From the NCBI RefSeq assembly GCF_052425735.1, contig NC_135768.1, positions 16,678,001 to 16,742,000 of the forward strand: a stretch of DNA of 64,000 bases. The letters run 5' to 3'. Positions 29,391 to 30,248 of this stretch are shown here, piece after piece. The notes below the pieces were generated by a model. It saw nothing but the letters and a program-made list of their open reading frames with translations. It was not told the DNA's origin and ran no database searches. Each line of letters starts with the position of its first letter. Position 1 is the stretch's first letter. The position numbers and the translations under genes are program-made. The stretch is from Oculina patagonica. Lineage: Eukaryota.

Positions 29391-30248
29391 ATGGGAAGTA
29401 ATTCTCATCCAGAAACAATTCTTATCGTAAACTGTGTCCTGAATGCACCATTGATGCTTATATCCATTATTGGCAACACTCTGGTGCTAGCCGCCATATT
29501 GAGAACTCCGTCGCTTCGTTCACCGTCCACTGTCTTTTTATGCAGTCTGGCTGTCTCAGACATTCTAGTTGGACTCGTCGTACAACCGGTTTATATCGCA
29601 AATGTATTCAGGAATGATTCGCTGTTCAAGATAAGGAACACTGTGGCCTTTTCTGCATGTGGTGTGTCACTCATGACAATGACAGCCATAAGTGTGGATC
29701 GGTTCTTGGCTCTTCATTATCACATGCGATATCCAGATTTGATGACTACACTGCGCCCAATGTGTATATCAGCAACGCTTTGGCTACTTAGTTTTCTTCT
29801 ATCCTTCATAATCTTTTGGAGATTGAATTCTTTTCAGTTAGCCATTGCTGTGACTATTGTGATATGCCTTTTAATTTCAACTGTTTGTTACATAAAAATT
29901 TATCAGATTGTACGACAACATCAGTTACAGATTCAAGCCCAACAACAGGCTATGGAAATATATAATACTGAAAACAATCAGAACATGGATCAATCAAAGA
30001 AAGGTGCCATAAATACTTTTATATATTATATCGTAATGATTCTGTGTTATACCCCGATGATTATTAGCGTGTCTATCAGAGCCACTTCCCGCAAGCGCTG
30101 GACAGACACATGGGTCTTAGCAGAGACTATAGCATTTATGAACTCTTCCATCAATCCATTTTTGTATTGCTGGCGCCTTCGCGAGCTTCGAACGGCAGTT
30201 GTTAAGACTGCAAGGCAGATGTCTTGTAATCTTACAGAGGAAAACTAG
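29391..30248 (+). CDS. Intronless class A GPCR (cluster family), 285 aa
   Basis: All motifs intact. Confidence 0.92.
   Translation: MGSNSHPETILIVNCVLNAPLMLISIIGNTLVLAAILRTPSLRSPSTVFLCSLAVSDILVGLVVQPVYIANVFRNDSLFKIRNTVAFSACGVSLMTMTAISVDRFLALHYHMRYPDLMTTLRPMCISATLWLLSFLLSFIIFWRLNSFQLAIAVTIVICLLISTVCYIKIYQIVRQHQLQIQAQQQAMEIYNTENNQNMDQSKKGAINTFIYYIVMILCYTPMIISVSIRATSRKRWTDTWVLAETIAFMNSSINPFLYCWRLRELRTAVVKTARQMSCNLTEEN

Follow-up and report, generated by a model that had tools for sequence, protein, structure and literature searches.

Results

A nucleotide-identical block in an array of receptor genes

What keeps a short stretch of coding DNA identical, silent positions included, among receptor genes that have otherwise diverged? 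The question is raised by a 64,000-nucleotide stretch of the Oculina patagonica genome (G000:C11:16678001-16742000; coral, genome size 529 Mb), hereafter the window, where an intronless class-A GPCR gene occurs in approximately 20 copies. Ten copies retain intact ORFs of 280–290 aa, and the remainder are frameshifted, stopped or fragmentary; identity between window copies is 72–78% at the DNA level and 59–71% at the protein level. The array spans ~230 kb of its contig, with more members located on C1, C5, C7 and other parts of C11. The reference gene, whose codon numbering is used throughout, matches Pfam PF00001 (7tm_1) with E=6e-32, and the translated copies carry the motifs DRF (DRY-type, at the end of TM3) and NPFLY (the NPxxY motif of TM7). 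The nearest database proteins, from O. patagonica and Orbicella, are named melanocyte-stimulating hormone receptor-like. On these sequence features we classify the copies as class-A (rhodopsin-like) GPCRs of the coral "melanocortin/MSH receptor-like" expansion.

The block in question covers the DRY motif and ICL2. We refer to its sequence in this array as the A type, and its positions in the window are as follows.

29391–30248, plus strand: intact intronless class-A GPCR gene of 285 aa, the codon-numbering reference (ORF, Pfam)
29694–29734, plus strand: A-type DRY/ICL2 block of the reference gene, a frozen 41-mer covering codons 102–115, VDRFLALHYHMRYP, exact in seven window copies
8178–8218, minus strand: exact A block, gene 7682–8524
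23823–23863, minus strand: exact A block, gene 23300–24169
31722–31762, plus strand: exact A block, gene 31416–32258
33953–33993, plus strand: exact A block, frameshifted copy at about 33608–34510
40180–40220, plus strand: exact A block, frameshifted copy at about 39877–40733
54789–54829, plus strand: exact A block, gene 54486–55343
4417–4457, minus strand: A block with one mismatch, gene 3909–4757
21359–21399, minus strand: A block with one mismatch, gene 20839–21708
37710–37750, plus strand: A block with one mismatch, stop-carrying copy 37401–38267
43101–43141, plus strand: A block with three mismatches, gene 42798–43766
50340–50380, plus strand: A block with one mismatch, gene 50037–50891
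52967–53007, plus strand: A block with two mismatches, frameshifted copy 52652–53521
59059–59099, minus strand: A block with two mismatches, gene 58545–59402

The initial annotation of this DNA had reported the 41-mer as identical in seven named copies, nearly so in most others (pseudogenes among them), and flanked by sequence that barely aligns. All three statements hold: the seven copies are exact, seven more lie within one to three mismatches, with frameshifted and stopped copies among them, and an upstream blastn match was obtained for only 44 of 351 paralog pairs, whereas the CDS of every pair aligns at ~76%. The 14 window matches at ≤3 mismatches compare with a chance expectation of 0. 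Across the genome, the same threshold returned 50 matches. Of these, 23 are exact, and unlinked copies on C1, C5 and C7 are among the 50.

Silent sites of the DRY block are depleted beyond protein constraint

Such a block could be nothing special, that is, the product of protein conservation, two-fold and non-degenerate codons and a moderate dS, with the best-looking window picked by eye. Silent divergence, however, is not uniform along the CDS. For the ten window copies with intact ORFs, Nei-Gojobori pS is 0.09–0.15 in the DRY block vs 0.42 gene-wide; TM2, with a pN of 0.04, yet has a pS of 0.48, and pS reaches 0.67 in TM6. In a tree of 35 Oculina copies, the third positions of codons 102–114 changed 0–3 times each, and the block averaged 1.3–1.9 third-position changes per codon vs 4.6–6.4 at equally conserved codons elsewhere (mean 4.6 for two-fold and 6.4 for four-fold codons). 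The silent distance among A paralogs is 0.067–0.094 in the DRY block vs 0.34 in the rest of the gene, where 34% of silent codons differ.

These differences were assessed with a codon-order permutation scan conditioned on degeneracy class and amino-acid conservation. The main cluster had been fetched wholesale, and its copies were thus not ascertained by the 41-mer. The gene-wide minimum fell on codons 102–114, with 9 silent changes vs 39.7 expected (scan-corrected permutation p=1e-4), approximately four-fold below other conserved codons. The window copies alone gave 4 vs 16.7 (p=0.007), and the permutation scan of the A block over the Oculina lineage gave p=5e-5. The frozen stretch comprises codons 103–114, possibly 99–115, or 36–48 nt. 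Maximum-likelihood per-site rates over all 52 sequences, which are noisy and include saturated sites, yielded only p=0.04, in line with the view that nothing special is at work; the conditioned permutation scans reject that view for the DRY block. The silent identity seen at the outset therefore does exceed what the protein imposes.

Mutational explanations of the trough were also considered. CpG hypermutability does not account for it. Nor does a mutational cold spot, which is ruled out by the 20 non-intact copies: they deviate from the family consensus equally in the DRY zone (0.057) and at other conserved sites (0.055). At first and second codon positions of the DRY zone, non-intact copies deviate at 0.053 vs 0.017 in intact genes (p=7e-5). 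Decay is visible in an old pseudogene of the window:

27230–28063, minus strand: old pseudogene with a decayed DRY zone, in which 8 of 50 family-conserved sites are changed and four bases are inserted

At the silent positions of the block, pseudogenes and intact genes differ from the consensus at 0.063 and 0.044, respectively, a non-significant difference with low power to separate selection from conversion.

Two further near-invariant blocks had been described, at TM1/ICL1 and TM7/H8. Both are shared among copies, and only the first is depleted at silent sites.

29463–29528, plus strand: TM1/ICL1 block with a weaker, approximately two-fold silent depletion (66-mer, eight window matches at ≤3 mismatches)
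30132–30175, plus strand: TM7/H8 block (NPxxY region), conserved in protein and unfrozen at silent sites (16 window matches at ≤3 mismatches)

In the Oculina lineage, TM1/ICL1 accumulated 37 silent changes vs 72.9 expected. For TM7/H8, the ratio of seen to expected silent changes was 0.9–1.0, that is, no depletion; its invariant look is due to Met, Trp and two-fold codons, and its uniformity is explained by protein conservation. Here, and for part of the visual impression elsewhere, nothing beyond the protein needs to be invoked.

The TM1 zone also occurs as an inverted pair of fragments, unique within 254 kb of the cluster:

27954–28590, no strand assigned: inverted pair of TM1-zone fragments (27954–28025 and 28519–28590) with 72-nt arms, 82% complementary, and a 493-nt spacer

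The pair is predicted to form an imperfect 72-bp stem (z=-5.7) and, if transcribed, could be a candidate hairpin RNA.

A second sub-family carries its own frozen haplotype

Searches with 21–22-nt tiles of the A block identified a second sub-family, B, comprising at least 67 copies with a 41-mer of their own, exact in 23 of them, on C3, C4, C5, C9, C11, C12 and C14. A third haplotype occurs in a C2 cluster near 30.09 Mb. The B block encodes the same VDRFLALHYHMRY as the A block. The two differ at 6 of 41 bases: the changes at positions 9, 12, 13, 24 and 34 are silent, and that at position 40 replaces Pro with Ala. The exact B 41-mer is present in at least six hosts (Oculina, spB, spC, spD, G43 and OMLO), and versions with one change occur in Orbicella and two further host groups (e.g. 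L082:969-1009). Oculina B proteins are only 73–95% identical to each other, so the B copies are not recent duplicates.

For the B scan, 20 genes from eight host groups were retrieved by protein rather than by DNA, and comparisons used the B copies of other corals together with Oculina B proteins. The gene-wide minimum was again the DRY block, with one silent change vs 17.5 expected (p=3e-4) and no third-position change at 11 of 12 codons. The TM1 zone was the second lowest, with 4 changes vs 18 expected. The B scan is thus an independent replication of the freeze, in a different clade and in different species. With the minimum at the same location in two independent clades, and with the scan-corrected values given above for A (unbiased cluster and Oculina lineage) and for B, we consider it highly improbable that the DRY block is nothing special.

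The two haplotypes also bear on codon selection at the level of translation, in which speed or accuracy at a critical conserved stretch, the end of TM3, would fix the codons. Selection for translational accuracy at conserved residues is an established idea, and protein conservation is highest in the frozen zones. However, one amino acid is written with differing frozen codons within a single block (His as CAT then CAC, Arg as CGG then CGA, Leu as TTG then CTT), and A and B freeze different synonyms, which makes codon preference unlikely. TM2, TM6 and NPxxY are equally conserved in protein and unfrozen, and A-type genes of other corals lack the freeze. We therefore regard selection on translation as very unlikely to be the cause.

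Gene conversion exchanges segments between copies

The initial annotation had offered two causes for the invariant blocks, of which the first was repeated short-tract gene conversion. In this account, regional conversion homogenizes the blocks, whose silent sites would be neutral and of recent coalescence, and the blocks serve as crossover points for the variable segments. Exchange between paralogs does occur. We identified four clear chimeras with mapped breakpoints, which concern variable segments and not the block itself. Two of these chimeras precede the window by 4–9 kb. One (cluster position 34801, ~5 kb away) switches subtype near nt 500, its 5′ part resembling gene 31416 (78:14 informative sites) and its 3′ part another subtype (51:20); the second carries a ~115-nt foreign tract across TM6–ECL3. 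In all, three copies besides the 34801 chimera contain tracts of ~100–150 nt. In two of these three, foreign tracts of ~100–120 nt start directly at the 3′ edge of the DRY block, one of them exchanged between loci 570 kb apart, which supports the proposal that the blocks act as exchange points.

Further observations agree with homogenization by conversion. The haplotypes are sub-family-specific; cluster copies are more uniform than dispersed ones, which carry about twice as many block changes per copy (1.25 vs 0.67); and pseudogene blocks are still fairly uniform at silent positions. GC3 is slightly raised in the DRY (0.46) and TM1 (0.44) zones relative to the rest (0.385), a small rise that stays below 50%. 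In a Sawyer-type run test, the longest identical runs between pairs fell on the DRY and TM1 zones, but we rejected the test as evidence of conversion since it re-finds zones of low variability and is confounded by site-rate differences. The block is also exact in an old singleton on C5, on another chromosome, which argues against conversion.

The frozen haplotypes are shared across species

Comparison between species separates conversion from constraint, because the genealogy of the sequences prevents neutral conversion, at any rate, from pushing between-species divergence below neutral. DNA of relatives was taken from an NCBI assembly (spA, L001), from ENA coral holobiont assemblies of spB (L002/L034/L117), spC (L033/L115) and spD (L116), and from Orbicella faveolata (L003) and Pocillopora damicornis (L032). 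A further 80 coral-metagenome loci were collected with back-translated peptide patterns and are unbiased as to codon choice. In the gene trees the species are interleaved, which indicates that many duplications are older than the species splits.

Oculina, spA and spB have one and the same A consensus, and over nine taxa the B consensus shows at most 2–3 silent changes, all at one codon. By comparison, orthologous upstream flanks diverge by 0.115–0.185 between Oculina and spA and by 0.28 between Oculina and spB, and the closest cross-species gene pairs differ at a fraction of silent codons of 0.19 (spA), 0.24 (spB) or 0.28–0.33 (Orbicella-like hosts). In the closest cross-species pairs, silent distance is 0.18 in the block vs 0.39 in the rest; between species, B genes differ by 0.049 in the block vs 0.205 in the rest. 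Pairs from one species and pairs from two are equally distant at the silent sites of the frozen zones (DRY plus TM1), at 0.148 for Op-Op (Oculina), 0.155 for spB-spB and 0.150 for Op-spB, and the block has no species-diagnostic site. We calculated a Poisson upper bound that treats each species' block as one neutral unit, the case kindest to conversion; with 12 codons and neutral distances that come from three flank alignments and from the gene family itself, it is 0.019 when A is taken by itself and ~1e-4 to 2e-3 when A and B are combined.

The freeze has limits. Between A and B, silent divergence is 0.455 in the block and 0.415 in the rest of the gene. No trough is seen in the A-type genes of Orbicella-like corals (ratio 0.79, p=0.9), and the constraint is therefore not a universal one; one B orthogroup common to three hosts has accumulated 5–6 block changes, as an escaped lineage. 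Pocillopora copies are saturated. Taken together, the A–B divergence, the unfrozen A types and the escaped B orthogroup indicate that the freeze acts within expanded sub-families and can be lost. A freeze confined to Oculina, as a per-host comparison of block and rest had seemed to indicate, was rejected, the samples of the other hosts having mixed A and B haplotypes.

The equal distances within and between species, the lack of species variants and the slight GC3 rise make neutral conversion alone unlikely. Homogenized regions in bird gamma-c ORs and teleost protocadherins give species-specific clades (10.1101/2025.11.14.688425; PMC1852091), whereas the A consensus recurs in three taxa and the exact B block in at least six hosts. 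Active exchange in the array, the excess of changes in dispersed copies and the weak silent change in pseudogenes suggest that conversion probably contributes to uniformity, and exchange probably uses the blocks as homology anchors without being the main cause of the freeze. Of the conversion proposal, exchange between paralogs is thus borne out and the role of main cause is not. We consider regional conversion with neutral silent sites an unlikely explanation. The core observation holds, and is stronger through the second sub-family and the cross-species replication.

Probable selection on the nucleotide sequence and a possible reader

The second cause originally offered, a DNA- or RNA-level element inside the CDS, such as a shared small-RNA target, is the better fit, as the synonymous constraint is replicated in two sub-families, and a nucleotide-level element is better supported than conversion, which we judge improbable as the main cause. 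We infer that selection causes the freeze: purifying selection would act on the nucleotide sequence itself, added to selection on the protein. Each expanded sub-family would hold an arbitrary frozen codon haplotype of its own, kept across species, with A in this window and B elsewhere in the genome and in many corals, and some lineages would have lost the freeze. Selection of this kind, counting an RNA-leaning version and a DNA element together, appears somewhat likelier than all other causes combined.

What might read the element is a more speculative matter. We give an even chance to the reading that the DRY/ICL2 block, and more weakly TM1/ICL1, is a synonymous-constraint element with a putative RNA-level, base-pairing reader. 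That reader would be an RNA partner common to the members of a sub-family, possibly small RNAs, perhaps derived from family members themselves. Base pairing would account both for the position of the sites on the longest protein-conserved stretches and for the sub-family-specific haplotypes, and in our reasoning it suits location and haplotypes better than a protein-binding DNA site would.

Several searches looked for such a reader. Three 21–22-nt tiles spanning the block were run against the genome at ≤3 mismatches; matches at ≤2 mismatches were family copies only, with no stand-alone antisense locus. A search of the block against Rfam returned no family, and local folds, with z of 0 or above, gave no stable or conserved RNA structure. 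A predicted duplex between DRY and TM2 ranked in the top 2% for the A consensus and was discarded as it is absent in B. An overlapping reading frame was likewise dismissed: only four window copies have more than 100 open codons in the +2 frame, whose product is not the same in A and B. In the literature on coral miRNAs targeting GPCRs we found nothing relevant. The frozen 36–48 nt exceed the length of one guide (21–30 nt) or one miRNA site.

In a related, quite unlikely scenario, the blocks would be identity tags through which sub-family members cross-regulate by homology-dependent RNA silencing. Small RNAs would derive from family transcripts, antisense copies or pseudogenes, and only the 40-nt blocks would be long and identical enough for cross-talk among diverged paralogs. 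Such a network could, for instance, enforce one or a few receptors per cell, or control dosage. Selection for identity with other members would fix one arbitrary haplotype in each sub-family and hold it across species, and a copy leaving the network would drift freely.

The element could instead act in cis as DNA, as a sub-family-wide platform for a multi-finger protein, an exonic enhancer or silencer, or a receptor-choice element in the coding exon. It would draw on the same evidence of constraint, and the outcome of the searches for RNA structure and an antisense locus favors it; coding exons are moreover known to be able to act as enhancers (PMC3371700). Nevertheless, there is no reason why a DNA element should fall on the two protein motifs that are most conserved, the 6 of 41 bases that differ between A and B would require two binders or a tolerant one, and a footprint of 36–48 bp is long for a single factor. 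We therefore hold a cis-acting DNA element to be distinctly unlikely.

Discussion

Uniform coding blocks in receptor arrays are usually ascribed to gene conversion. Here, between-species divergence and the test for species variants point the other way, in two independent sub-families. A close parallel is offered by the bird gamma-c ORs, also a large tandem family of intronless class-A receptors with mosaic genes, in which zones uniform at third positions lie alongside diverse ligand-facing zones. The homogenized regions of the bird genes form species-specific clades and are GC-rich (10.1101/2025.11.14.688425), whereas the coral block haplotype is the same across species, with equal distances within and between them and a GC3 of 0.46. 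The practical consequences extend to other analyses, since the blocks distort recombination tests and trees of these families and, on the other hand, are ready probes or primers for telling sub-families apart.

The clustered protocadherins of teleosts are a second case of regional gene conversion with lineage-specific homogenized regions (PMC1852091), as described by Noonan et al. 2004 and cited there. They share with the coral receptors discrete regions of high identity common to the paralogs of a sub-cluster, and the argument that protein constraint cannot yield identity at silent sites. In the protocadherins, such regions extend over hundreds of bases with >99% identity and a GC3 >50%, and they are specific to a lineage (PMC1852091); the coral region, by contrast, measures 36–48 nt, is shared across species, and its GC3 is not strongly raised.

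The coral block also resembles the synonymous constraint elements of coding exons (as conceived in PMC4014394, with FRESCo, PMC4376164, as a viral analogue): in both cases a short CDS stretch has a synonymous rate far below the background of its gene and is conserved across species, a sign of an overlapping function. In the coral genes the rate is below background in both sub-families (9 vs 39.7 in A, 1 vs 17.5 in B), and constraint between species is found except in the A-type genes of other corals. Known elements of this class are defined on single orthologous genes, whereas the coral element extends over dozens of paralogs, has frozen haplotypes specific to each sub-family and is lost in some lineages. 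Our results thus point to an undescribed family-wide element in the CDS of those orphan receptors whose expansions are the largest in stony corals.

If the element is read by RNA, a further parallel lies in plants, where miR482/2118 targets the P-loop-coding motif of NLR genes. There, as would be the case here, the pairing region is the most conserved protein motif of an expanded family. A single small RNA is able to control an entire expanded family, silent sites come under constraint where ~20 nt pair, and in cnidarians miRNA–target pairing is near-perfect and leads to slicing. We know of no small RNA for the coral receptor block. Unlike the plant sites, the coral stretch has roughly double the length of a miRNA site, and its two haplotypes would call for a pair of guides or for guides that the family itself supplies. 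Should it be read by base pairing, the block would be an animal counterpart of the plant miRNA control of NLR genes and would provide a handle on how cnidarians control hundreds of near-identical chemoreceptor-like genes.

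Chimeric receptors and a second sub-family

Clear chimeric receptors were found at two copies of the 254-kb cluster lying 4-9 kb upstream of the window start (C11:16669238 and C11:16672801, on the contig that carries the window) and at 24.25 Mb on contig C1. Breakpoints in these C11 and C1 copies fall in TM5/ICL3, TM6 and TM7, and immediately after the 41-mer DRY block; one exchange joins two C1 loci separated by 570 kb.

Sub-family B is larger than sub-family A and possesses its own near-invariant 41-mer, with 67 matches at ≤3 mismatches in the Oculina genome, 23 of them exact. 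On C11, these sites lie at 16.94-17.18, 18.92, 19.67-19.73, 20.49-20.60, 20.87, 21.82, 23.03 and 23.45 Mb, and others are located on C3, C4, C5, C9, C12 and C14. Two further haplotypes are possible: the C2 cluster at ~30.09 Mb may carry a third, and C9 may hold a fourth at ~0.84-1.0 Mb.

Additional reading frames within the array

An alternative frame spanning the DRY block is open for 104-125 codons in four window copies. Most copies lack this open frame, and haplotypes A and B do not conserve it. Two other ORFs lie among the array copies, and a Pfam search with the 281-aa ORF returned no match.

Open reading frames in the window
23643-24020 (-), open alternative frame across the DRY block
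50303-50617 (+), same
52930-53244 (+), same
58822-59136 (-), same
14257-15405 (+), distant class-A GPCR of 382 aa within the array, 26% identical to array genes
34606-35451 (-), Ser/Glu/Lys-rich ORF of 281 aa between array copies

Repeats and inverted sequences

The TM1/ICL1 zone is duplicated in inverted orientation beside a pseudogene (27954-28025 and 28519-28590), the sole such pair across the 254 kb of the cluster. Transcribed as a single RNA, it would be predicted to fold into a long imperfect hairpin (z=-5.7).

Directly 3' of gene 29391 lies a very high-copy repeat (30287-30520), probably a SINE-like element, for which contigs assembled from public sequencing runs reach depths of up to ~1e5-1e6, with many loose ends on either side. 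Separately, positions 16600-16787 form a MITE-like palindrome that is unrelated to the receptor genes and close to perfect: its 73-nt arms are 97% complementary and enclose a loop of 42 nt.

Array surroundings in other corals

Crypton-type tyrosine recombinase (Phage_integrase and DUF3504) and reverse-transcriptase genes are scattered among the receptor copies of other corals (coral holobiont spC, L115:14443-15354 and L115:5453-7072; spB, L002:18605-18871 and L117:7431-7826), and may aid receptor copy dispersal. A Glyco_transf_18 gene adjoins the array in both Orbicella faveolata (L003:1-80) and Pocillopora damicornis (L032:28858-32793), and this common neighbor indicates that the array location is old.
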